DNA of 63,699 bases, filler included, from Octopus bimaculoides (Eukaryota), in assembly GCF_001194135.2 (NCBI RefSeq). It is 9 parts of 7 records of this genome, joined end to end, with 100 filler letters (N's around TTAATTAATTAA, not from the genome) between each part and the next. Parts side by side here need not be neighbours in the genome. Positions count along the whole stretch, not along the records: positions 1 to 16,622 come from NC_068983.1; 8 more parts are not named here. One strand, 5' to 3'. The number at the start of each line of letters is the position of its first letter. The first letter of the stretch is position 1. The translations under genes and the position numbers were made by a program. Shown in pieces: positions 1-16,622 of the stretch. Under the pieces are notes generated by a model, which saw only the letters and a program-made list of their open reading frames with translations, was not told the origin of the DNA and made no database searches.

Positions 1-330
1 GGTAGGAGGGAGGGTGGGGGAGAGAGACAGGAGGAGGGGGTTAGATGAAGAGTGGAGGGGAGTTGAGCCCATGTGGCGCAAAGGAGCGAAGATAGAAGAT
101 TAATCCCTGTTCACGGCGCAAACGGGAGTCCGGATGGCCCCTGTGCATGGACAATCCAAACACAGACAGGTGTTGCCGCAAGGAGTGGCCGGCAGAACGG
201 AAGTGGCGTGACACCGGGGTGTCATTGCCGACGTTGATATCTCGGAGGTGTTCCGCGAATCGGTCGGCCAGGCGGCGCCCCGTTTGTCATATAGCGAAGT
301 TATGAGAGAAGACACAAAGAGTGTCAGGTA
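1..330. promoter_or_regulatory. GC/CpG-rich segment, candidate promoter or first exon
   Basis: Visibly GC- and CpG-rich against an AT-rich background. It has G-tracts at 1-60, an ETS-like ACGGAAGTG near 197-205, and ATGAGAGAAGACACAAAGAGTGTCAG (302-327) followed by a donor-like gtaatg. No downstream partner exon was found. Confidence 0.25.
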
Positions 331-2651
331 ATGCTAAGTGCTATGGTCAGACCGTGGTTAAACTCTTGGTTCGATAGTGATACGAGTGAGGAATCTAATG
401 TGGGTCTTGTATTAACATGCATATTTATATTAGAGAGAATGAGATAACAAAGCCAAGGCTGTGGGGAGTTTTCAGGACAGTCATAAGGAAATAGTCTTAC
501 ACCTGTTTTGGGGATAATATGGATATCCATTCATCAGAGATAATGTGAGAAGACTAAATTGAGGAAATATTTGAGTTCGAATTATTATGGAAAAGGAGGA
601 GATAGGAAATATAGAGGGAAATAAGAGAATGAAAGTAGAAATAAGATATCTAAAGATATTGTAGTTGCAGTTCCATTACTCGAGGAAAATGTTGTGTAGA
701 AGTAGTAAAAAAGTTTCCTGCGCATGCTATGTAAGTTCCAATAGCAGTTCATGTTTTGTCGTTTCAAAGTATGGAACCGTGGAATCTGTGTTGCTCGTTC
801 GAAAAGGTCTTTGTGGTGTGAATTCACACATATGCAATATATATGTAATAATTAAATTATATGCTACACACTTTATTGTGTTCTGTCATGCACGTGATCC
901 CCCGGTCCGTGGAAAAATTGTCTTACACGAAACCTGTCCAAAGGACCGCTATTTTAGAGAATAGGAAACTATATCACCGATTTAACTCGTTAGAAGATTA
1001 TTTCAACATGGAATGTAAAACATGATCGTAACAAAAAAAAACAATAATTCAGTAATGGAACAAAATTTAAAGCTTTTGTGTTGATCGATAAAATTTAAAG
1101 TTGCTAAAAAGTAATTACTTTTTAAGACTACTTAAAAGTTATTACTCTTAAAAAACAACACAAGATCAAAAATTTCGATTCAGTTGACTTTAGTTCGTGA
1201 GTAACATTTTCTTTATTGACCTCCAAAAGATAGAAGCTTGATTGAGATGACAGTCTAACACAGAGCATTGATGAACAAAACTAAATATTGTAAGGCATTA
1301 ACATTACTTTTACTTCATGTCTCTCACTCTTTTCATTTTCGTCTTCTGGTTAATGATATATGAATATGATATATATCGACTTGTTTCGTTTCTGTTCTAA
1401 ACCATTTTATTTTTGTCTTTTTTATAGAAAAATATGACTGATTGACTCATCCCGATTATATTGTTTTCTGTTATTCATTTAATTGGTCAAGCGTGGAATG
1501 TAAAATTGTCTCAGCAAGATTTAAACCCATCATAAAGCTGGCTAAAGTTAAACATTATAAGAAAGTCACTTCAGCTCTCTACAGTTGATAAAATTCTGGC
1601 AAATTTAATAACCAGCTCCAGATTTAGAGGTTATGCCTTCATATAACTTATATCTATGAAACTGGGGATGGGGGTAGATAGAAATGTATGTATATTCAAG
1701 TCGACAACCTATTTTTGTCGAGCGACGTAAAATCGAAATCGAGTGTTTTATTGCATTTCCAAACTATTTCATTCATGCGCACGTGATAGACAAATGAAAT
1801 AAAATCGCAACTACAAAGAGAGTAGATTTACTTCCTATGACCTAAAGACAACTTGCTGACTGACTTGAATATCCCTTACCTTATTAACAGAAAGTCGATT
1901 AATATTATTCGGAAGAGGCTAATACTAAACAGTTGACTTGCTCCATCTTGAAGGTTAAGTGATGCAAAGAAAGCTACGAGGCAACAACGGTTGAATGTTT
2001 CAGCATGAAATTGTCTTCGTATTATGCGTAGTTTCAAGATTCACAACAAAAAGACATATTTTCTCCAAAAATAATATTCAATTCATAGTTTTTATCAACA
2101 AGTATATCAACTTGACACATGATACTTACTGGCAATACACTTGCCTGTAAATAGATATTATTTTGCCGTGTAATTTGACTGTAATTACGAGTCGTTGATT
2201 TTTTAGATTCAATTTCAAAATACTTCCTTATATGTGCGTAGCTTGGTGAATTTCGAGTTCCACTAGACTTTCTTGACATCTCTACAAAACATTGAAACAG
2301 TCAGCAATGATACTAAATCAGGTTTACAAGACATACCATACTCTGTATCTTAAACTAGCAATATGGCAGTAAAGTACCTGTCTATTACTAGAATATTTAA
2401 ACTACTAAAACATCAAAAGGAAGATCAACTCGCATTAAACTACCAAAACATCAAAAGGAAGATCAACTCGCATTTGCTTGATCGTGATCAGCACAAGTAA
2501 CGTTGGAGAGTAAGAAAATGTTTGTTGTTGTGGTTGTTGTTGTTGTTGTTGTTGTTGTTGCTGCTGCTGCTACTTCTGCTGCTAAATAACGAGCTAAGTA
2601 AAATAACTACAAGGTTCCAGCGAACCCGAGTCACCAATACTAATGGAAAGC

Positions 2652-2855
2652 AATGAGCTGGCAGAATCGTTAGCATGCCGGACAAAATGCTTAACAGCAT
2701 TTCGTCTGTCTTTACGTTATGAGTTTAAATTCAGCCGAAGTTGACTGTGCCTTTCGACGTTAATAAAATAAGTACTAGTTTATCACTAGGGTAGATGAAA
2801 TCTACTTATCCCTTCCCCTGAAATTGCTGGCCTTGTACCAAAATTTGAAACAAAT
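2652..2855 (+). mobile_element. tRNA-derived SINE, family A (GGCGAGCTGGCAGAA head, GTCGACTTTGCCTTTC body)
   Basis: Matches the many other copies in this window: gagctggcagaatcgttagcatgccgg...aaattcagccgaagttgactgtgcctttc...aagtactagtt. Confidence 0.8.
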
Positions 2856-2904
2856 ATTTATACTATGAGAGGTGATAAGTTCGTTGGAAAATTACTTATA
2901 TATA

Positions 2905-3813
2905 CAGGGGTTGGACAAAATAATGGAAACACATAGTATCATAACATAGTAATTTTGAAATATCTATAAAACCGTCAAACGCTTGTTTATTTTCCTGTTT
3001 TCTTTTTATTTATTATTAGTGTTGCTTAATATGTTTTGCTAAAATTGCTGTTTCTTTTCAGATATCATCAGAAAAAGGTAATTAAAATTCATTAAATTGA
3101 CAGATCTATCGGACTTTCAAAGAGGTCAAATTGTTGGTGTTCGTATAGCAGGCGCTAGCGTAACGAAAACAGCCGAGATGTTTGGTGTATCAAGAAGTAC
3201 TGTTTCGAAAGTAATGACAGCCTTTGAGAAAGAAGGAAAAACCTCCTCGTCAAAACAAAACCCAGGAAGAAAACCATACTTTGAGACAGAGACCGTCGGA
3301 CTCTTACGCGAATTTTTCAGGATGATAATGCACCAATTCACACAGCTAAAGTTGTTACTGAATGGCACGAAGAACATTCTAGNNNNNNNNNNNNNNNNNN
3401 NNNNNNNNNNNNNNNNNNNNNNNNNNNNNNNNNNNNNNNNNNNNNNNNNNNNNNNNNNNNNNNNNNNNNNNNNNNNNNNNNNNNNNNNNNNNNNNNNNNN
3501 NNNNNNNNNNNNNNNNAAGTTGAACATCTTATCTGGCCACCACAGTCCCCATATCTCAATAGTATTGAACATTTATGGTGCATTTTAGAGAAACAAGTAA
3601 GGAGTCGATATCCTCCCACATCATCACTACAAGAACTGGAGACTGTTTTAGCTGAAGAATGGACAAAAATTCCTTTGGAAGCAATTCAAACTTTGTACGA
3701 GTCCATACCTCATAGAATTCAAGCTGTAATTACTGCCAAAGGCGATCTTACCTCATATTAAAATAAATTTGTTTGAAATTTTAAGGTGTTTCCATTATTT
3801 TGTCCAACCCCTG
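2905..3813 (+). mobile_element. Tc1 (DD34E-type) DNA transposon, internally deleted, with a sequence gap
   Basis: Perfect 28-bp TIRs CAGGGGTTGGACAAAATAATGGAAACAC (2905-2932 and 3786-3813), flanked by TA. N-terminal HTH fragment TDLSDFQRGQIVGVRIAGASVTKTAEMFGVSRSTVSKV (3097 onward). C-terminal fragment WPPQSPYLNSIEHLW...IPHRIQAVITAKGDLTSY* ends at 3761. Confidence 0.95.
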
Positions 3814-5593
3814 TATATATATGATATATAAAGTCATGAGTGCCGCGAACAACATGAAGTATTAGATAACATCGTCAGCGTTTATTGAGAAAGCAACTAC
3901 AATTTAATATCTCAGGAGCAAAATAGTAAACACTTTAATAATAAAATGCTGCCTTAATGTGATAAAGCATTAATTAAATGAAATAAGCAAGGATGCCGAA
4001 TGAGAAATAGCACAAGCATAAGCTTATTATTTAAAATTAAATAGCAATGGCAGAAAACATGTATATTTTAGACTCAAAACATTACAAATTTCTTGGAGTT
4101 TCTTGAAGTTTTTTTTTTTTTTAATAACTAGTTTCAAACAAGAAATAGATATATAAACAAATGATAGCCATAGAAAGTGAGTGTAGTGGAAATTAATTGC
4201 GTTACAAAGACATCGACATTAATGTTGCTGTTACTGACAAAAGTAAAACTTCCGAAATCTTTCTTCGTTTTCAAAACACCGTCGAGATTTGGCTGTGAGC
4301 TATTGCACGGAACAACATCGAGAATTTATAGCTATCTGCCTATTCATCCAACTAGAAACATAGCTAATCAGTTCGTCACATATGCAGATAATTCAAATTC
4401 TTTGAAATAAGTGTGAAATACTGAATTTATGACAGAAAGAATATATGATTTTTTAACAGCTTGGCTTTTTGTAGTCATTAATGTTATAAGTGAAACAATG
4501 CTAACTGGAAATCGAAACTGGCTTGCAAACCTGGCTCCTCAGAAACTTAGGACAACACTACAGTGTCTGCCAATAAAAAAAACATACACACATGAAGTGA
4601 AAGCTTCCGCAGAAATGGTGATGTCAACAGGTTCAGCAGTAGAATGAAAATCGAAGGAAGGAGTTGAAGAATAATCTAGGCAGCCTCTGAGTGTGGTATA
4701 TAATCACTTTGACAAAGCATGCTGAACTGCAGCTTATAAAAAACTGCATTAATCAAGTGCTTAAATAAGACGAGAGCATCATCTTGGAGATGTCTCATAT
4801 GACTCCAAAACTCCAAAATGGATCTCTCTTTGCAAATACCTCAAAAAGAAACACTGCGAATATCAGCAAAAAGTTATATACATGTAAGTTTTCCGTGGAC
4901 CTGAGAGCGATGCAAACATCGATTCGAGATCATTATATGATGTGACATTTTGAAGTTTTCTTCTATAAGCCATATTAATCTAAAGACACATTCTCAGAAA
5001 GCTCCAAACATTCACGAAAAGGTGCCTCAGAAACAACTTTAACATAAGATATCCAGAAACGTTGAACAACAAAGACATCTGGATCAAAAACAAGCGAAAA
5101 CCCATCGACCAACATAGAGCGAGACTTATGTATGTAGAGATGGGTGAACTTTATGTTAACAAGACCAGAGAGATTTTTGACAAGGCAAACTTTGGATTGG
5201 AACTCAAGAGGCAAAAGGAAGGTAAAGCGCTCGAGAATAATCTGGCGGAGAACGATAGAACTGAAGATAACAGGAGTGACATAAGTCAACTGGAAAGGAA
5301 AACAAAGGACAGCGCATTGGAAAAATGCTGAGAAGAGATTATATGTTCCACCAGGAATCCGAATAGTTCATGATGGTGTTAATAAATATACACTATACAA
5401 GGGAAGAACTGTCTGAAATAAATGTAAACTAGAAATATTGGTGGAACATTTCCATCAAAGTTTCCTCAAATTATATACACAATAGGCCTGGCAGAAAATA
5501 TATCTACTATTGAGCATTCATTAAAAACCAGTGGGAAAGAGAACAGTTATGGTCCAATGCTTTCAACCAACATTTAAAAAAACCATATTCTCT

Positions 5594-5752
5594 TTTACTC
5601 TTTTACTTGTTTCAGTCATTTGACTGCGGCCATGCTGGAGTACCGCCTTTAGTCGAGCAAATCAACCCCAGGACTTATTCTTTGGAAGCCTAGTACTTAT
5701 TCTATCGGTCTCTTTTGCCGAACCGCTAAGTTACGGGGACGTAAACACACCA
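5594..5752. mobile_element. SINE family B (tactcttttacttgtttcagtcatttgactgcggccatgctgg...)
   Basis: Near-identical copies at 53675-53880 and 58487-58700, and an inverted copy at 37700-37860. Confidence 0.8.
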
Positions 5753-6361
5753 ATTCAGAATATTGAGTTAAAGGCTACATTTGGGTGCCACTGCATCTAG
5801 TACCCATTTCCTTTTCGACTTCAAAGCTCATGAGAAGGGCAAAATATATTCTTTCTCATTTTCTCTCATAATCATGTAGCAGGAAGCGAGTTCTCGATCA
5901 ATTGAATCTGCAGTTCTTCTCGGCAAGATGCAATTAAAGCAATCTCTCTCTCTGTCTCATTCACTCATTTTCTTTGCCTAGAACAAACCCAGAATGAAAT
6001 CGTCTGTTGTCTCTTCTCACTTAAGATAATCTTGTCACGTTTCTGTCGAAGAAGACATGGATTCCGCCGGGTTACAAAGCACGTTATGTTGATTTTCTCC
6101 TTTTACCTCAACCACATATTCCGTTCACTCAAGACATAGACCAAAAAATAGTTATTTCAAGAACATTTGCATAACACTACTTCTACAACACGTTTAGTCT
6201 AACCTTACTTTTATAGGTGTTGTAATCGAAAGTTGTTTCTTTCAAAATCTGTACTGTTACAGGCTTTAAGGAAGTAAACGCGTACTATATTGAATTATTG
6301 GGCTACTTATGCCATTAAGAGTTTATTCTTCTGGTAAGACGTTGAAAATAAAAGAGAAGTA

Positions 6362-6519
6362 CTGTTCTATATTCTAGAGATGAGGAATTCTGTACATTAT
6401 TTACATTGGGTGGATATATGTCCTCATCTTATTTGTCCTCATCTTGGAGAGTAAATCAGCCGAAATGTTATGTCACAACAAACAAGATGAGGACACATAT
6501 CCGTCCAATGTAAATAATC
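6362..6519. mobile_element. Truncated fold-back insertion of the hammerhead-bearing element (family E)
   Basis: The left arm is the reverse complement of the element 3' end. The right arm carries the 3' half of the hammerhead region (cagccgaaatgttatgtcacaacaaacaagatgagg). TSD is taaaagagaagta (6349-6361) and taaaagagaggta (6520-6532). Confidence 0.75.
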
Positions 6520-8272
6520 TAAAAGAGAGGTATTAGATATAATTTATCGTTGCTATCTCCTGCCTTCATATTTTCAACAAGTGTTGAATATATGGATGCG
6601 AGGACGTAAGTGTTCAAATAATACATTTACTTGTATCTAAATCTTCATATTAAAGAATGAGTGATTAAAAGTTCTTGTAAAAGAAATGCAATTATAACAC
6701 TCATATAACCACCGTATTTGAAACAACAGTATAGATCTGATTACACTTTTTGATGTACAAACAGTTTGTAGCTTGGGTTATGACAAAGACATGGTGTCAC
6801 TCTCTATACATAATTTTTTGCTACGTTATTACAAGGTTTCATGCAATGCAGACAGAGTCAATCTTATATGAACATTGCGTTTTGAGGTGCCGGACTTCTT
6901 CAACAGATAAATGATAATTGAGCGGATTTTTCACATTGCTGCGTTGATTCTTCATCCATCTTCGGGATGGGTATATAGTTGTGGAAACAGCCATTAGGAG
7001 AAACGCGCTGGTTTGAGTATGAAGCTGTAAAAACAGGTATGAAAGACAAAATTCGGCCGAGATCGATTCGACGACATTCGAATTCTCCCTGCTTTTACTC
7101 GCTAAAATCCTTTGTATTTAAGACCTTCGTTGAAGGAAAATTCTAGAACTTAACACGAAGACAAAAATTTTAATTGGCTGAAATGGGGTCTGCATGCATG
7201 ATAAACTCGCGATTTACATGTGATCGGAAATGGAGTTAAAACATCTGCCAAAAGTTCATGAACTTACATGAACTTATGTCAAAAAAATTAATTCAGAAAA
7301 CTAAAAATCTAGCAAGGCAGTATACAGAAACTATTTATAGTGTTAGAAGTGCTGTAGAATGAGCAAATCAGTTTCGATTTGCAGTTAGACACAATACCTT
7401 CTTCAGACTAACTTACCTCACTTCTACAAACTCACTAAAAATATCAAATTTTGCATATCTTAAATATTAAATTTTTTTTTGCCTCATTCCTAAAATAATC
7501 GGTGGCAGTTTCTATGAGGAATAATATGGGAGAGGAGTCGTAGAACTGCAGGTAAGATTTTCTTCTTTGAGAATGATAACAGGAGAATGATACCAGATAG
7601 AAATGTTCATTACAGAATGTTCTTGCAAGGAATAAAAAAGAAACATCAGTGAGTGTTTCAGTTAAAATATTCGTCCTTGGAATCATTTTTATTCTGATTA
7701 AGTTGTCCAACGTGATATTTTTCACGCGCAATCATTTTGATCACCTTATACATATTTATATACAGCAAAATTAACTGGATTGAATTCATTAATGACAGAC
7801 AGACAGATGAAATTACGAGGTGTAGCAGCCTACACGTTTGTGCGCGTACATTGTAATGTAGTAAATCGTCGTACTTCGCTAACATTTCAAGGTTCAAACG
7901 GTAAATTAATTCAGGTCTTGTGATTATATCAGTATTTAATATTGACTGTTTATAGTGTTTCTCTTTCTAAGAATTCAGGCTTTCCACCCGGCACCGCGCA
8001 TTATTAACCAGGCTATTATTGTAGTTATAATTTCATCCCCAAACCTAGTTTCTATCAACACCATAACCATTATCTACATACTCATCGGATCGCCCGACCA
8101 CTTGCCTAATCGGGACTACGACGCCTTCTATCTCCTGGACCTTATAGTACGTCAAGACAGCAAAGTGGTTGGAACGCCGCTAGTTTTTCGCTGGGTAAGC
8201 CGGGCAACAAATGTGTTTCATTTTTAACCCATCCGAGATAATTAAGCAGATGATGGAAACCATCTTCTAAGG

Positions 8273-9063
8273 CAGTGGTTCTTAACCATTTTAGTTGCCT
8301 TAACCCCTGAGACTCTCCAGAGTATTACCGTGACACCTATAATAAATTTTGTAATGGTGAATTTTGCGCAAAGGTAAGATAAAACAAAACTCTATGAAGA
8401 TCCTAATTCATTGAAAATATTACAAATAAATGACCTTGAAAATGCTAAAAAATGCATGGAGGTACTGAACATCATACAAAACCTATATATTCACTCAGTG
8501 AGAGGATTGATATTGTTTTGTAGTCAAAAATACATCAAAGCATGCCTTCGTTTTCAGTGCCATCATTGCTGAGAATGCAGCCTCGCAGCTATAGGTAGAG
8601 GGGGTGGCTGACTCAGCATGGTCGTGCACGCATTGAAAGAAAAGGAAAGTCGTCTTTCAGTTTCGCCCAAAATGTCGGAAACCCTTGTTCAGAAAAATCG
8701 ACCTTCAACTGAGTATCTTCACGCATTTGAAGCAATTCTACCTTCGCAGCAATATCAGTATCACTGATGGCACTGTCCTTCACTGAAAAAGGTCTGCAGA
8801 TCCACGCATCAGTACAGCGGTCATCTAATCCTAGGAAGTTAGCGTCATTGCCAGAAGACGAGCTGAGATCTCTTCACGGAAACTGCATTCAGCTTCTGGC
8901 ATAGAATCCAAGATAGTTGTCGTCTGAGGGAACGCTGCAACGCAATACCTCAAATACATGAAATAAATTACTTTCTGCCAAGCCCTCCGTGACTCCCTCC
9001 CTCCGAGAAACCTCAAATGGCCTTCTAACCCCACAAGGGTCATGACGCCCAGGTTAAGAACTG
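8273..9063 (-). mobile_element. hAT (Buster/Charlie-like) non-autonomous element with transposase C-terminal remnant
   Basis: 5' TIR CAGTGGTTCTTAACC and 3' TIR GGTTAAGAACTG (3-nt deletion). Perfect 8-bp TSD ttctaagg (8265-8272, 9064-9071) with central TA. Minus-strand remnants AWICRPFSV...ELLQMREDTQLKVDF...FWAKLKDDFPFLS and PSTYSCEAAFSAMMALKTK resemble the hAT dimerization domain. Confidence 0.9.
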
Positions 9064-9999
9064 TTCTAAGGTATGTCTATTCAAATCTCCCACATAAACA
9101 AAGTTCATCATCTCAGCAGTACAAGCTAATAACGATACCTACAACGCCTGATGAGTAGAAAATCCACCTCTACCAATTAAGTGTATTTTATCCACAACTG
9201 CAACTCATTCAAGACTACCAAAAGCCGTCTTCGTGCATTGCACAGCATGCAAAACTTCCCCACCTCTCAAATTGCAGCTGATTTTTCTGGTCTCTTGTCA
9301 ACAACCAACTTAACGGGATACATCTATCCACTATTCCTAATGAGAAAGCATCCGCGTTTTCTACTAATTTGCAACTAACTAGACATTGTACACACGCAGC
9401 AAAAAAGTTTATTTACATTAAAACTTTTCATAATTATGAGTAGTACCCACTACGAACAGCGAGTGAAAACTAAGGCAAAATGTAAGACTTATTTTGAAAT
9501 GAGTTTTGCCAAATGAACTTGTGGTGGCAGCTTGGGAACAACACAGCGTTTGTTCTGACTTAGTGCTCAATGTCGTTGTCTCCTCTGTTTATAAGACCGC
9601 AGTGCGCGTTGCACACTGGATACATGTGAGAATTCTTTAGCAATCCACGGCGGACACGCAAGCAATACAAGTCGCTTAATCTGACAAAGATCGAGCCAGT
9701 GTATTAATTCTATGCCTTCCATTGAGTGTAATCAATGAAAGATAATTATCTGATTTGTAAGTACTTCGTTAAGATTCACAATAAAACGAGGAGCAGTAGC
9801 ACATCCACGAGACATACTTAAGTTAAAATGAAATTGAAAATAAAACAACTAATTTTACGAATGTAAAATAGGAAATTACCCACTTTCTGCCACTTCAAAC
9901 CATCGAAAACCAACGGATCTGACGTCTCCTCCAGTACTCTCACTGTGTGCAAGAGCTAGCCTATATATTCACCAAACTTTTCAAGGTTTCAGTCTCATG

Positions 10000-10600
10000 G
10001 ATTTATGCTAAACTTTGAAACCTGCTATAATGTGTCCTGTCACCAAGATCAAATCCTCTTCTTTCACAACTTTTAACCCATCGATCTCACTTTTATTATC
10101 TCAAAGGTAATTTAAAACAATTGCAAAAAACTAATGTTCTCCAGCATCATGAGCTCCTTTTCCTCCTCAACAACCATCGAATGTTTCCATTGGGCCAGCT
10201 CTCCGGGTTGTGCTGTGTCACTGTCACTCCATTCCCCCACCACCCCCGTGGTCTCTCGACCATAAGAAACTTTGTGAAAATAATGTCATTACTCTTAACA
10301 TTAGCAAACAGTTGGACTGCGTCTGGCACGAAAACCTCTTGAACTATCCTGCTAAGAGTTCTTTCGTCTTTTGGATCAAAGCTTTCCTGCTAGATCACAT
10401 CAGCACAGCATGCGAAAGTAGGATTCATTCCTAGCCAAATCCCAAGTCTGGTGTACCCCAGGGCTCACAGAGATGAGGTGTGTCGCTCACACTCGTCATT
10501 AACATTAACAATTCAGCTTACAGTCATCTAATAACACTCACTCTAATGCAGATTATACATTTCCATAGATGTGTCATCCGTACACAACCTAAACGTCGCA
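10000..10600 (+). mobile_element. Decayed CR1/L2-like LINE reverse transcriptase fragment
   Basis: Decayed RT motifs in order: LNISKQLDCVWHENLL (consensus DISKAFDRVWH), FWIKAFLLD, KSGVPQGS (10444-10467), and NADYT (YADDT). Many frameshifts. Confidence 0.8.
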
Positions 10601-12540
10601 TGAGAAACCTGCACAAACTGACTCTAGAGCCACTACTGTAGAAGCTGGAAGTTTTGAGTGAAAACCCGTAGCAACTAGGAGGAAGACCCGTATTTGCATA
10701 CGCGAACGTCATCGTAATAGTGCTAGACACCAGACACATTGAGGTGATCGGCACTATTCTCAGTTACTTCTAATCAGTGACAAGAGCGAAAATTAACCAG
10801 TTGTTGGGTCTGTAGCTAGGCACCTGCAGAGGTCCATATCATCCAACAGCGTCTTAAGGCGCTGGACGGACGGAGCTGTTCCTCTGATAGAGCTGCAGTC
10901 CTGGATCAAGGGTAGGCCGAAGCAAGGTGCATTGTGCTTTGAGTGCCATCAGGCGCTCACAGCCCTTAGCTAGTCGGAAAAGCGAAGGGTGGATCTTCCG
11001 CCATGATGTTGTATACAGGATTAGTGGTAGGTAAGAGTGAGATGCCCTCGGAGAAAAAGCGTCGATGAAAGTCAACTAACAGGTCTTTTCCTGAGAATTT
11101 TCCGGCTGGAACCCATGGATAATTTCCAGAAATCCCTCACCCAGCAGTGTTACCGAGAGGCATCGCAGGTCTGGGATAAACTTTGCAAATATGGTAGTGT
11201 CGTCAACTGTGCACTGAGGGGATGAAACCATCATGCACACGCCAGTACAGTGGTCGAGCATTACTGACTTGTAGATTATGTCAAACAGCTGTCATCACGT
11301 GTAAGATGGATCTAGCTATTGACCGAATCCATCGTAAAGATAGGTACACCACCCTCCTTTGGTTGGGAAGGACAGGCAGTTTTCTTCTGTTTAGTGGCTG
11401 TGATGAATGAGGCTGAAAAGACTGAAGATAGAGCTTCCCTTTTCAATTAAGCCCGCATCGATTTTTTCAGGTTCCACTTTGAAAGTGAACGTTGAGAGAG
11501 AGGTGTTGCCCTTAAATTTGTTGAAAGGTGGGTGAATGTTGCGAGAATAATCCAAATGAGTGGATCTTACTTTAAACGTGTGCCTGTAGGTCGAGATGTA
11601 TGACGAAAAGAGGGACACTTGCCAGGGTACTCCTGGTAAGTTCAGTTAGGATGTATGAGGTTCCTTGGATACTTCAGATTGTCTCCCACCTACCCATTGG
11701 GGAAATTGTTATAATTTTCTTAACTGTTGCTACTTTTATTGTTTTCACATATTTATGTAAATTGCCACTGCTCTTTGTCTTTATATTTCCTGAATGTTTT
11801 TTGAAGCCCTTGTAGCCAATAACTTTTTTTTTTTCTATTCAACCAGCATTAGCTCTGCCTTTCATTTCATTAGTGTTGATAAAATAAATGCATTCTTAAC
11901 TGGCACAAAGTCAAATTTGTACTGAAGAAGGTATATGTCAATCGAATCCAACTCCCATCAGTACATACCTAGTATTTTATTGGTACTAGAATGAGAAAAG
12001 ATAAATCCAGCCCTAACGGGATTGCAAGACAGACTAGAGAAAACTTAGTCTCATCATTGTACTGTTTATACTTTGTCACAAACATCTACCATGAAATAAT
12101 GAATGTAAAAATATTTTTTAATACCTAACCTACTTCATTAGATTGTTAATAAAATTACCTCAAAAGATTGAGGTAACAAATCAGTAACAATAATGATAGT
12201 GATAGATTTTTTTTTTATCCTTTATTGATTTCCACTAAATACAGAATAAGAACCCGTAATTAAATCAGTAATTAAATCAATAATATAATCAGAAGGCACA
12301 AAACTATAAGCCAACATGTGATCAAGGAATTTCTGATTTGATTCCACTTTGAATTTTCAAAACAAGTGTATTCTTAAAATAAAATTCTTTTATTGTATTA
12401 ATATTCAATGTTTCAAGAAATCCTGTCATTAAAATATTCAAGTATATCTTTTTCTTTCTATAACACATTAACCTATGACTGCCCTTGGTTCTATAGTTTT
12501 GGTTCTATAATTATTGAAAAAAAATAACAGTAGGAAAACA

Positions 12541-12899
12541 TTTTTTCTACTCTAGGCACAAGGCCTGAAATTTTGGGGGAGGGGGGGGCAGTCGATTAGA
12601 TCAACCCCAGTATGCAACTGGTACTTAATTTATCAACCCCGAAAGGATGAAAGGCAAAGTCGACCTTGGCGGAATTTGAACTCAGAATATAAAGACAGAC
12701 AAAATACCGCTAAGCATTCTTCCCGGCATGCTAATGTTTCTTATTTCTTTATTGCCCACAAGGGGCTAAACATAGAGGGGTCAAACAAGGACAGACAGAG
12801 GGATTAAGTCGATTACATCAACCCCAGTGCGTAACTAGTACTTAATTTATCGACCCCGAAAGGATGAAAGGCAAAGTCAACCTCGGCGTAACCGCCTTA
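12541..12899 (-). mobile_element. Two tandem family A SINE copies
   Basis: Two repeats of accccagt..aactggtacttaatttatcgaccccgaaaggatgaaaggcaaagtcgacc, with different 3' tails. The second runs into a gap. Confidence 0.85.
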
Positions 12900-13359
12900 N
12901 NNNNNNNNNNNNNNNNNNNNNNNNNNNNNNNNNNNNNNNNNNNNNNNNNNNNNNNNNNNNNNNNNNNNNNNNNNNNNNNNNNNNNNNNNNNNNNNNNNNN
13001 NNNNNNNNNNNNNNNNNNNNNNNNNNNNNNNNNNNNNNNNNNNNNNNNNNNNNNNNNNNNNNNNNNNNNNNNNNNNNNNNNNNNNNNNNNNNNNNNNNNN
13101 NNNNNNNNNNNNNNNNNNNNNNNNNNNNNNNNNNNNNNNNNNNNNNNNNNNNNNNNNNNNNNNNNNNNNNNNNNNNNCAACCAACAAAACTGAGAAGGCA
13201 AAACCAAAAGGGACAGTAATGTATTTTAGTCTAATATATAGCCTTAGCACTTTCCCAACACCCCACTAATATAGTGAATACAAATTTGCAAAAATTGTAC
13301 CAAAGTTTTCAATATATATATACATGAATATTTTGTTGACAGAATTTCTAAGATATGGC

Positions 13360-13440
13360 ACAATACTGGTTACAAGATCAGATCAGTTTCTTCCTCAAAT
13401 GAAGGATTTCAAAAACATAATCGTCATAGAAGCATATTAC
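13360..13440 (-). promoter_or_regulatory. SECIS element (form 2) in the thioredoxin reductase 3' UTR
   Basis: mRNA sense reads AUGAC GAUUAUGUUUUU GAAA UCCUUC AUUU GAGGA AGAAACUGAUC UGAU. This gives a UGAC/UGAU non-canonical quartet (AUGA at 13427-13424), a helix II of about 11 bp, an apical AAA and a mini-stem. Helix I is aauau/guauu. It lies about 167 nt downstream of the in-frame UGA. Confidence 0.9.
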
Positions 13441-13481
13441 AAATGCACATAACCAATTTAGCACCACACTGTTTTTGTCAA

Positions 13482-13585
13482 TGCTGCTGCCCACACCTTG
13501 GTAAAAAATTATTGAAGAAGTTTCATTCAGTAATGAATCAAACTGACTTTAAATATTTTACCAAGGTGCATAGAGGGCAGCAGCA
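13482..13585 (-). other. 104-nt stem-loop immediately after the TXNRD stop codon
   Basis: Perfect 11-bp helix (UGCUGCUGCCC/GGGCAGCAGCA), a 6x1 internal loop, a perfect 13-bp helix (CACCUUGGUAAAA/UUUUACCAAGGUG), then further pairing capped by AUUCA-UUAC-UGAAU. Confidence 0.8.
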
Positions 13586-13587
13586 AA

Positions 13588-13656
13588 TTAACCTCAGCAA
13601 CCACCAGCTTCTACTGACATCCCACTACTTTTACTGGTAGCCAGGGTAGTAAAAAC
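13588..13656 (-). CDS. TXNRD1: Thioredoxin reductase, terminal coding exon with selenocysteine: VFTTLATSKSSGMSVEAGGC-U-G*
   Basis: Acceptor ctgtttttttcag, phase 0. TGC TGA GGT TAA gives the Gly-Cys-Sec-Gly C-terminal motif, with the Sec TGA at 13594-13596 and the stop at 13588-13590. The tail VFTTL..KSSG resembles cytosolic TXNRD1/TXNRD3 more than TXNRD2. Exact orthology is not established. Confidence 0.96.
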
Positions 13657-13820
13657 CTGAAAAAAACAGAAAAAAAAGACATTACTAAACATCTGTTTGA
13701 TTTCACCAATACAAAATACATGACATAAAATTCAACAAATTATTGTATTTATCATCATTATTTAACATCCATTTTCCCTGCTAGCATGGATTAGAAGGTT
13801 TGACAAGCCAACCCATGCAA

Positions 13821-13873
<53 letters not shown>

Positions 13874-14046
13874 CACACATACGTTTGTATAAACATCCTA
13901 TATTCAAACACAGCTTAAGGCAGCTTCTTCAAAGCAAGGTATTTACCCATGGCCAGACTTTTTTCACAGAAGATGGATATAAACATTCGTAGTGATGCTT
14001 GTTTATAACCATCCCATATATATATATGTATACACACACACACACA

Positions 14047-14190
14047 CTGGATTTCTTTCAGTTTCCATCTACCAAATAAAATTCACCAAGCTTTGAAAAC
14101 ACTTGCCCAAGGTGTCACACAGTGAGATTGAACCAGAAACTACAAGGTGACCAAGCAAGCTTTTTATAGACAACCATATTCCTGCCTATA
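14047..14190. mobile_element. SINE-like repeat family C (gggtttctttcagtttcc.tctaccaaatccactcacaagg...cacttgcccaagg)
   Basis: Similar copies at 37910-38020 and 54255-54415. Confidence 0.65.
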
Positions 14191-14684
14191 CATATATATT
14201 TAACATGTTTGCATACACTCAGACATGGGAATGTATTTTGCTATGGAAATAGTCTGAACAAAAATTTTCCTACTAGACAATGTGTAAAAGCCAACTGGAG
14301 CTGTGAATGACATCATTGGATTGCAGAACTCGAATATTTCTGCATTGTACACATCATTAGCTATGAATACCAAATCTGCCATTCACAAACCAAAAGATCA
14401 ACTTGTTCTTAGATTAGAACAGCAAACACTACATTCACTGATGAGTATGAAGCATGGAGTGTACTTGAACATATTAAATATGACTTTATATGAATATATT
14501 TTATTCAACGCTGCTTTGCGTGACTTCAGTCAATTCTAGCTTGACCAAGCTTTACACTCACATCAGCAAATATACTGTTTGTTGTCCTAAGTATAGTAAT
14601 AAATTTCCCACACTGAGTACTATCCTCCAAAGACACAGCTATAATGGATAATGCAAACATTTCAGTTAGGTGTATCTGATGGAA

Positions 14685-14715
<31 letters not shown>

Positions 14716-14833
14716 TAACTCAACATTTAAGTGAACAATAGAATACATCTATCATCAGGTGATATGTAGAAGGTACAACTTACACATCATAGATTTGTAC
14801 CCAGATAAAAATCAGCAAATTAGACATACTTAC

Positions 14834-14968
14834 TTCAGAACAGGTTGGATGAATTCCAACTGTAGCATTAAAGTCCTTCTTTGTAGCTCCTAATCGCAGA
14901 GCTACAGCGTATCCTTGGGTCACTTCACCAGCATTTGGGCCGACATAATGAAACCCAATAACTTTATC
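14834..14968 (-). CDS. TXNRD1: Thioredoxin reductase, penultimate coding exon: [45 protein letters not shown]
   Basis: 135 nt, phase 0-0, acceptor gttttcag and donor GAA|gtaagt. It carries [10 protein letters not shown] and the GIHPTCSE His-Glu catalytic motif of the interface domain of large thioredoxin reductases. Confidence 0.96.
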
Positions 14969-16314
14969 CTGAAAACAAATTATTCATTAATTATTGATCC
15001 ATATAACAATCTTATCTTATTGTTCTCTCTGTTCATCTCCCATATATCTTAAAAAGAGCTAGAATAAGGGAACTACACTAAACAACCCTTTAAGAATTAA
15101 ATGCCTTCCATTTCAATCATATTCTGATTAGATCTGCAAATATAGACATGTACATGAACACCAAAACCTTGTACAGATAAATGTTATTTACAATATCATC
15201 CAATATGGAATAAGAATGTTTTCTAAAATTAATCTATTGACAAGAATAAAGTGTAACACCTGCAGCAGGATACAAATCAAATGAATGGAGAAGTACTAAC
15301 CATTCTTCCTTCACAACAGAGGAAACTAATTTTTAAAAATATACAAATTCTTTTTCCAAATCTTGTACCCAAAGTATGAGAAACAATAACACTTTGTAAC
15401 AAAAACAATTATTTTTTTCTTTTATTTTTGGCCAGCAAGCGTTATTTTCTATTTACTTCTATCTAGAAATCAAAGGAAGTGACTACTATTCCCTTCAAGC
15501 ATTGATTTTGTGACCATGAATGTTTTGAAACAGACTCATTTTTTCCATTATATTTTAGACAGATTCAGTAATGAGTTGCTGAAGCAGAAATATTGTTATA
15601 GCAAATATTCTGCTCAATACCACAAATTTGTCAGTTGCTTGACCTTAATCACTTGAGCATATCCCTTAGTGGCTGACAATTTGTGCACCTCTAATTATGA
15701 GCAAAAGTAGTAGGGGAGCATCATAGCCATATGATGAGAGGGATTATTTGGGGTTTGAATAAATGTAACAAAAACAAAGTTTGAAAGAAATATTAGCCAT
15801 TTTTCATACTTTCTAGGGTAAAAATCGTGTTACAGTGTAATTTATAATTCCATTTGCATGGCACCAACTTCTAAAATGTAATTTCAAGATTTTTAATGCA
15901 CAACAAAACCATATGTATAAGTAGAAAGACAAGATAAATACAAGTAGGTTAAATGAGTATATTTACAGGGAATACAAAAGACAAAAGCTGCCAAGATAAG
16001 ACATAACTCCTTTCATGCAATTTGTATTCTTTTCTTTCATCTGTATTTTTCATTGCTTATAAATATATGCATGAAGCCTACTTGTGTTCAGCTTGTTTCT
16101 ACTTCCATACCACAGTGAAGATTGCTCTTCCAACTGACTTTCTACACCAGAGGCACATACCTGGGATATAGGAGCTAGATTTTAAGGTTTCAACTATAAA
16201 TGTTACCGAAAGGATATCTATAGCATGCTTACTCTGCATTCTCCAACACACTATATATGCATCGAGATATACACATACGTATAAATTTCGATATATATAT
16301 ATATATTAAAAGAA

Positions 16315-16622
16315 ACAGGCTTGGAAGGACTGGAAGAACGGTGGTAGCAGGGAATTGTACCAATGTGCCAGAAGGGAGGCTAGGCGACAGGTTTATTTAG
16401 CCAGAGGGGAAGCAGATAAGGAAAGATTTGCCAATGTTCTGCGCCATGAGGACCAAAGACTCGAGGTATTTCGTGTTGCAAGACAGTGTAGGAGAGAGAA
16501 TAGTGATGTTGTAGGAGAGAAATGTGTTCGCATGGATGATGGTACGCTTGCATTAAATGAGGTTGCAAAGAAAGAGGTCTGGAGATGCCACTACGATAGA
16601 TTGCTTAATAAAGAAAATGAAT
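16315..16622 (+). mobile_element. RTE-clade LINE fragment (endonuclease-RT linker region)
   Basis: Open frame AWKDWKNGGSRELYQCARREARRQVYLAR...WRCHYDRLLNKENE, resembling the linker (W..HF..LLN) that precedes RT. Cut by a join spacer. Confidence 0.7.

Follow-up and report, generated by a model that had tools for sequence, protein, structure and literature searches.

The mRNA of the large thioredoxin reductase (TXNRD) of Octopus bimaculoides carries, at the very start of its 3' untranslated region (3' UTR), a hairpin of 104 nt. It represents, in this genome, a closing helix of ancient origin that is conserved at the 3' UTR start of the mRNAs of selenocysteine (Sec)-type TXNRDs. The helix is under selection for pairing, is anchored a few nucleotides past the penultimate UGA, and is placed at a set distance before the selenocysteine insertion sequence (SECIS). 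A combined recoding role in the decoding of the penultimate UGA is considered the most probable function, with a probability of roughly 60%. The window, which is the whole stretch of DNA analysed, has a length of 63,699 nt, filler included, and joins 9 parts of 7 records of assembly GCF_001194135.2. The TXNRD gene is located on the minus strand of the first part (positions 1 to 16,622, from NC_068983.1; hereafter, the piece), which contains its last two coding exons.

A conserved closing helix at the start of the TXNRD 3' UTR

The joined 65-residue peptide of both exons matches Pfam Pyr_redox_dim (2.8e-15), as well as many TXNRD C-termini in which GC precedes the UGA, and the C-terminal GCUG motif is common to all homologues found. 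The frame closes with UGC-UGA-GGU-UAA at 13599-13588(-), which places the Sec codon inside its last few codons. GGU-UAA and the following UU separate the UGA from the first base pair by a spacer of 8 nt, the stem beginning at UTR nt 3. From there, the hairpin (13585-13482) folds into an imperfect duplex of ~40 bp, weaker in its AU-rich top (Table 1). The 115-nt stretch 13482-13596 has a minimum free energy (MFE) of -52.5 kcal/mol, compared to a mean of -22.7 (standard deviation 3.1) for its shuffles (z = -9.5); none of 200 shuffles reached this value. Despite a G+C content of merely ~37%, the hairpin is the most stable of 3,974 sliding 104-nt segments on both strands of the 16.6-kb piece, at -52.4 (mean -16.6, standard deviation 6.4). 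When folded within a context of 271 nt, the hairpin and the SECIS domain both persist (z = -7.0).

The hairpin is wholly contained in the 3' UTR: at most, the stop codon joins it via a weak extension, and it is hence not part of the coding sequence. This extension was seen in the 271-nt fold, where GUUAA at 13592-13588 (the stop plus the GU of the Gly codon) pairs with UUGAC at 13481-13477; it would bring the helix within 1 nt of the UGA. Extensions of a similar kind, reaching 1-2 bp into the stop codon, are present in 14 of 45 loci.

A previous reading of this DNA, made from the sequence only, had described a large stable hairpin 8 nt past the Sec UGA, 104 nt long, with perfect helices of 11 and 13 bp, separate from the SECIS and ending about 40 nt before it. 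The position, the length and the 11-bp helix are all borne out, while the second helix turned out to have 14 bp, i.e., 13 Watson-Crick pairs and one G.U. The separation from the SECIS was also recovered: the sole Rfam SECIS_1 match lies outside the hairpin at 13436-13369, 45 nt away, in agreement with the stated distance; with its lower stem extended, the SECIS begins, however, only ~13 nt after the hairpin. The hairpin itself was considered as a SECIS and rejected, as its stems are plain Watson-Crick helices without the AUGA...GA quartet motif.

Exact matching of three ORFs of the window retrieved no further assembly of this genome. TXNRD C-terminal loci of other organisms, obtained from ENA (ERZ250...), JGI and Logan, were used for comparison. 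Four invertebrate-like genomic contigs (L001-L004) have their exon structure in common with the window. After UGC-UGA-GGU-UAA, they continue with N-CCCUGCUGCUGA...CUCUCUA, the exact complement of which, UAGAGAG-NN-UCAGCAGCAGGG, is found 464, 1,271 or 1,428 nt downstream, followed by the SECIS ~55 nt later. L003 and L004 have identical arms around loops that differ by 157 nt, which indicates that loop insertions are tolerated. A near-perfect palindrome of ~50 nt (GUGAAGACCC.GAUGAAAUGCCGCA...) is present inside the 1.2-1.4-kb loop of these two loci, at ~9407-9460 in L003 and ~9397-9450 in L004, and the loop of L004 also carries tandem repeats; both the palindrome and the repeats look like insertions tolerated by the helix.

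Two further pairs of loci (L005/L006 and L007/L008) have hairpins of ~70-80 nt like that of the window, then a SECIS. Their arms read CCCUGCUGUUGC(U/G) and GC(A/G)ACAGC(G/A)GGG, with one-sided G.U changes between them. MAFFT, which aligns by sequence without regard to structure, was applied to the window, L005, L007 and L008: UGCUGCUGC aligns with UGCUGUUGC, at an equal distance from the stop, and the 5' arm of the window, UGCUGCUGCCC, aligns with CCCUGCUGUUGC with a compensatory change. The consensus hairpin of this alignment comprises 27 pairs, 7 of which show compensatory changes.

The helix extends to distant animals. The TXNRD1 of the gray whale (L089, GCA_029890035.1) forms a duplex of -42.7 kcal/mol between UTR nt 1-29 (GCCCCAGUGUGGGUGCUGCUGCC...) and nt 159-189; from there, it is 53 nt to the SECIS core, and UGCUGCUGCC is carried as in the window. 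A UGCUGCUG/CAGCAGCA core is common to helix 1 of the window, L001-L004, L016 and the whale. The spider Stegodyphus dumicola (L091) has ACUUACUGCUACC, with its pairing partner GGUAGCAGUAGGU located 160 nt downstream. Metagenome contigs were also scanned, which added 80 loci, many of them on GC-rich, intron-less contigs of the picoeukaryote type or on metatranscriptome contigs. The 3' UTR starts of these are quite different (GCCCGCCGAAG, GCUAGCCACCGA, GCGCGUCGCC or ACCCUACUACUC, for example), and each has its complement shortly downstream. Overall, a helix is present at this position in most of ~40 other non-redundant Sec-TXNRD 3' UTRs, with a loop between the arms of 0 to ~1,400 nt (82 nt in the window). 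The alignment of TXNRD 3' UTRs, proposed by the sequence-only reading as a check for compensatory changes, therefore revealed a conserved helix, with divergent but complementary arms in whale, spider and dozens of Sec-TXNRD mRNAs. One locus of the set, L088 (543-740), encodes a Cys-type large TXNRD, ending in ...GCGGGK..., with an apicomplexan-like C-terminus and no UGA.

After removal of near-duplicates, 43 UTRs were left from the first 88 loci, and L089-L091 were added for some of the tests. When the first 30 nt were paired against the rest of the UTR, 25 of 42 UTRs had at most one in 100 dinucleotide shuffles as good, and the helix started at UTR nt 1-3 in nearly all of them. As a position control, pairing of the first 30 nt with the next 300 nt was compared to that of control 30-mers drawn from each locus, 3-54 in number (21-54 except in the window). 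The post-stop segment scored above every control in 22 of 42 loci, with medians of -31.9 vs. -20.6 kcal/mol (Mann-Whitney p = 1e-9, paired Wilcoxon p = 6e-7), even if the 300-nt range misses the four long-loop cases. The segments also pair more strongly than those after other long open reading frame (ORF) stops of the same genomic contigs (medians of -35.1 vs. -26.5, p = 9e-4), in a rough control that includes spurious ORFs of GC-rich contigs. Finally, a covariation table was built for 44 sequences from two 12-nt segments, one at the UTR start and one ending at the outermost partner. It contains 79.5% paired cells, vs. 45.9% when shuffled and 36-54% in slid registers, and 215 double-change cells vs. 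80 when shuffled, a count reached by 0 of 500 shuffles; these values overstate the pairing, as the 3' arms were picked by complementarity. This bias is absent from the shuffle, position and other-stop checks and from the MAFFT alignment.

These comparisons bear directly on two other origins of the hairpin, both raised by the sequence-only reading. The first is a young palindromic insertion, either a miniature inverted-repeat transposable element (MITE)-like repeat or a fold-back duplication, which landed in the 3' UTR by chance. The near-perfect arms in AT-rich surroundings would suit such an origin, and the piece does contain another, unrelated inverted repeat at 6393-6521. However, no target-site duplication is visible, the flanks (UAAUU on one side, UUGAC on the other) having only UU in common, and no second copy of the arms was found within 3 mismatches in the 16.6-kb piece. 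Moreover, helix 1 aligns with the helices of L005, L007 and L008 at the same distance from the stop, its core recurs in L001-L004, L016 and the whale, and a helix is present in distant taxa. An insertion of this type is thus extremely improbable.

The second is a pre-miRNA-like precursor, or a duplex that mainly serves as an ADAR editing substrate. A long imperfect duplex of ~40 bp would be appropriate for either one, and editing of such duplexes is common in cephalopods. Two plant miRNA families of Rfam also cover the hairpin with weak matches, but their 19.3 and 18.0 bits are far under the gathering thresholds of 70 and 85, and the Rfam search assigned no family to the hairpin. In the orthologues, it is the base of the stem that is conserved, whereas the length of the supposed precursor runs from 0 to ~1,400 nt, which does not fit with processing by Drosha or Dicer; cutting at this place would, furthermore, part the coding region from the SECIS. 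Editing does not explain this pattern of conservation either, although incidental editing is possible as a side effect. Both functions are considered very unlikely.

Distances between the UGA, the helix and the SECIS

The SECIS of the window is recognisable by its AUGA core (13427-13424), by an apical AAA and, on the 3' side, by a GA at 13379-13378. Its Rfam SECIS_1 match amounts to 17.8 bits, under the gathering score of 35; the same model gives 27 bits in L005. Within the whale TXNRD1 3' UTR (L089 21800-22250), SECIS_1 returned nothing at E <= 1, while a canonical SECIS is readable by eye. Hence, the weak score in the window is no sign of a defective SECIS. The 3' arm and the SECIS core are 54 nt apart in the window; in the animal-like UTRs, most of this stretch belongs to the 5' strand of a long lower stem of the SECIS, a stem that starts 12-18 nt past the 3' arm.

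Two details of the SECIS itself were observed. Just before the AUGA, the 5' strand contains a small extra hairpin (13449-13432(-) in the window), which recurs at the matching place in L001, L003, L016, L089 (whale) and L090, so that the TXNRD SECIS looks like a three-way junction. AUGA is replaced by UUGA in L003 (~10514), L004 (~10661) and L090 (~777), corresponding to UTR nt 1328, 1485 and 240, respectively; the remainder of these UUGA-type elements aligns with the AUGA-type SECIS of L001.

The spacer between the UGA and the helix was determined by direct extension of the core helix, because a duplex search that also took in 30 nt of coding sequence gave no information, spanning the entire 60-mer with large loops. 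All 33 loci in which the helix is good have a spacer of 4-9 nt, with a mode of 7 (8 in the window). SECIS cores were placed in 22 loci; a crude finder had missed half the loci, and the cores used for the distances were picked by eye. Along the linear sequence, the distance from the UGA to the core ranges from 98 to 1,490 nt, a 15-fold variation with a coefficient of variation of 1.1. With the helix closed, the median path is 62 nt and the coefficient of variation falls to 0.21; the window itself has 62 nt. Nine loci (the window, L001, L003, L004, L005, L007, L016, the whale and L090) share a path through the helix of 59-63 nt.

Relation to known elements and a putative role in decoding

To our knowledge, most work in the field regards the SECIS as the sole cis element, and the accessory stems tested are limited to those of SEPN1 and SELENOS. 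The TXNRD hairpin belongs with the proximal stem-loops (PSLs) of mRNAs of selenoproteins with a C-terminal Sec, i.e., SL1 of SELENOS and the PSLs of TR1, SELENOK and SELENOO. Six of the eight human C-terminal-Sec mRNAs, TR1 included, are predicted to have a stem-loop right after the stop, and for TR1 and SelK, its function was called unknown (PMC6844570). Judged by position, motif and spacing in the whale TXNRD1, the hairpin probably corresponds to the PSL predicted for the human TR1 mRNA. The TR1 PSL is of the same gene family and is located directly past the stop after Sec-Gly, as in the window; the whale helix, in turn, starts at UTR nt 1 and resembles that of the window in UGCUGCUGCC and in the distance to the SECIS core (53 vs. 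54 nt). Unlike the present comparison, the published structure prediction covers one species (PMC6844570).

SL1 of SELENOS is similar in that Sec is penultimate and that the stem-loop is conserved and wholly in the 3' UTR (PMC3628699, PMC6844570). It starts 3 nt into the 3' UTR and promotes Sec insertion only if near the UGA (PMC3628699). It belongs to another gene, however, works together with a downstream SPUR sequence and has been proposed to hide a splice site; for TR1, no SPUR-like element was found by the SELENOS authors (PMC3628699, PMC6844570). The Sec redefinition element (SRE) of SEPN1 (SELENON) and the SELT hairpin are likewise conserved stem-loops 6-8 nt 3' of a Sec UGA (PMC1440920, PMC8704476). 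The spacer is 6 nt in SEPN1 and 8 nt in SELT (PMC1440920), and stem and spacer length both matter (PMC1440920, PMC8704476). These elements are compact hairpins inside the coding region, whereas the TXNRD helix is in the 3' UTR, can span loops longer than 1 kb and has its 3' arm at a set distance from the SECIS. The SRE-like nature suggested by the sequence-only reading can thus be retained in part: the UGA spacing resembles that of the known elements and compensatory changes are present, but the position outside the coding sequence is not that of the SEPN1 type. A stable helix 4-9 nt past the recoded codon is also typical of the stimulators of -1 frameshifting and stop-codon readthrough (PMC3159437), with the difference that TXNRD recoding also needs the SECIS. 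Deep conservation with covariation, a long-range helix and a constant through-helix distance to the SECIS were not found described for this element in the literature searched; an earlier mention is possible.

The combined recoding role would work as follows. While the UGA occupies the A site, the helix base, 4-9 nt on (8 in the window), would be at the mRNA entrance of the ribosome, where it could slow the ribosome or disfavour the release factor during delivery of the Sec-tRNA. At the same time, the first bases of the 3' UTR would pair with the segment ~54 nt upstream of the SECIS core and loop out the intervening RNA. The closed helix would in this manner keep the SECIS ~60 nt from the UGA, next to the ribosome as the UGA is read. 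According to Martin, Harney and Berry in 1996, eukaryotic SECIS elements reportedly need a minimal spacing of 51-111 nt; ~60 nt is near the lower end. As the ribosome terminates two codons past the UGA, only the first few pairs of the helix would need to be opened.

Such a geometry can be related to the position dependence of Sec insertion. In TR1, Sec is inserted only if the UGA is at or close to its natural position, as set by the SECIS/3' UTR, and the Euplotes TR 3' UTR likewise allows Sec only near the C-terminus (PMC3737529). A SECIS that is held near the ribosome would fit with both. A broader form of the recoding role is a eukaryote-wide clamp, from animals to picoeukaryotes of the algal type, with a path of ~60 nt whatever the 3' UTR length, which, rather than the SECIS alone, makes Sec insertion at the penultimate codon efficient and specific. 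This generalisation is possible and is put forward tentatively; if true, it would explain why the TR1 and Euplotes TR 3' UTRs serve C-terminal Sec only, as well as the toleration of loop insertions of more than 1 kb.

Alternatively, the helix could be conserved for a job other than recoding: it might stabilise or localise the mRNA, bind a protein, mask a splice or poly(A) site, or shield the SECIS complex from ribosomes reading through the stop. Conservation and covariation demonstrate selection for pairing and not its purpose, the SELENOS PSL has been proposed to hide a splice site, and AU-rich stability elements are known from TR1 3' UTRs (cited in PMC3628699). The deletion of the TR1 stem-loop without a rise in Sec insertion (PMC6844570) also speaks for this explanation. 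However, every helix-bearing UTR examined belongs to a Sec-type gene, the single Cys-type locus of the set (L088) having its post-stop region outside the test. Moreover, the two distances of importance to recoding are both constrained, that from the UGA to the helix (4-9 nt) and that from the 3' arm to the SECIS core (~54 nt, nine lineages); a generic stability or localisation element need keep neither of them. The helix is, in addition, stronger than what follows other long-ORF stops of the same contigs. A purely non-recoding function is, hence, judged rather unlikely.

Several observations weigh against the recoding role or limit its extent. A taxon is assigned for two of the comparison loci, the gray whale L089 and the spider L091, most of the others being without one, and outside the animal-like group, the SECIS positions derive from the crude finder and inspection by eye. 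The path through the helix is not constant: it amounts to 45 nt in the spider and to 92 and 112 nt in L009 and L051, and some GC-rich contigs of the algal type have longer gaps. About a quarter of the UTRs are without a strong helix, some of them being on truncated contigs and some having small local hairpins only, and the location of the 3' arms by complementarity inflates the pairing in the covariation table. Concerning the published experiments, Turanov et al. hold the SECIS element itself responsible for the position restriction (PMC3737529), and Cockman and colleagues state that deletion of the TR1 PSL 'did not increase Sec insertion', its function being called unknown (PMC6844570). This remark is a single sentence; it gives no report of a decrease, of limiting selenium or of compensatory mutants (PMC6844570).

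TXNRD that ends at the UGA, without Sec-Gly, is inactive and reportedly promotes apoptosis in mammals (SecTRAPs, cited in PMC3628699). Therefore, what governs the efficiency of Sec decoding is of importance to redox biology and selenium status. The conservation from whale and spider to protist-like contigs, together with the path of ~60 nt, provides a testable hypothesis on how the SECIS is presented at a C-terminal UGA. For annotation, the lesson is that long 3' UTR insertions inside the loop do not functionally distance the SECIS from the UGA.

The 5' arm of the window contains UGCUG, the same pentamer as in the Cys-Sec codons UGC-UGA (13585-13575 vs. 13599-13594). UGCUG is also present in the 5' arms of L001-L008, L016, L078, L083, L089 and L090, and the 5' arm of L078 (GAGCUGCUGAGUG) is closely like its coding end (GGCUGCUGAGGC). 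Because the 5' arm and the Cys-Sec codons share this pentamer, the 3' arm (CAGCA) could pair with either, and it may thus be able to switch partners.

Feature coordinates and other elements of the piece

The coordinates of the gene end, the hairpin and the SECIS are compiled in Table 1.

Table 1. Features of the TXNRD gene end, the hairpin and the SECIS, in window coordinates
Feature	Position	Strand	Basis
Penultimate TXNRD coding exon	14968-14834	(-)	Open frame, cag acceptor, gtaagt donor
Last TXNRD coding exon, VFTTLATSKSSGMSVEAGGC-Sec-Gly-stop	13656-13588	(-)	Read from sequence
Sec UGA	13596-13594	(-)	Read from sequence
Gly codon GGU	13593-13591	(-)	Read from sequence
Stop codon UAA	13590-13588	(-)	Read from sequence
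UU linking stop codon to stem	13586-13587	(-)	MFE structure, spacer table
5' arm of helix 1 (UGCUGCUGCCC), conserved closing helix	13585-13575	(-)	Perfect 11-bp inverted repeat
Hairpin interior, lineage-variable part	13574-13493	(-)	Bulge, helix 2, AU-rich upper stem and loop
5-nt bulge	13574-13570	(-)	MFE structure
Helix 2, 14 bp (13 Watson-Crick and one G.U)	13569-13556 with 13506-13493	(-)	MFE structure
3' arm of helix 1 (GGGCAGCAGCA)	13492-13482	(-)	MFE structure, inverted repeat, alignment
Single-stranded linker, hairpin to SECIS lower stem	13481-13469	(-)	Context folds
SECIS with long lower stem	13468-13355	(-)	Hand reading; fold z = -2.1; layout same in orthologues

The last TXNRD intron contains a (TA)n/(CA)n microsatellite at 13803-13899, which gives rise to spurious sub-threshold Rfam matches on both strands (mir-297, mir-1277, mir-3149 and others).

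The second large inverted repeat of the piece, at 6393-6521, is intergenic and consists of 44-nt arms, 89% complementary, around a loop of 41 nt. Its fold, at -44.3 kcal/mol, ranks next in stability within AT-rich sequence, and it could be MITE-like; its match to Rfam MIR5743 is weak (29 bits vs. a gathering score of 111). Transposon remnants are suggested at three further places. An ORF fragment at 3097-3380(+), cut by an N gap at 3383-3516, encodes a helix-turn-helix of the Tc1/mariner type (Pfam HTH_23, 2.8e-7) and also has a weak match to the Sleeping Beauty helix-turn-helix. Transposon-like ORFs, without a Pfam match, are also located at 16355-16622 and 8613-9043.

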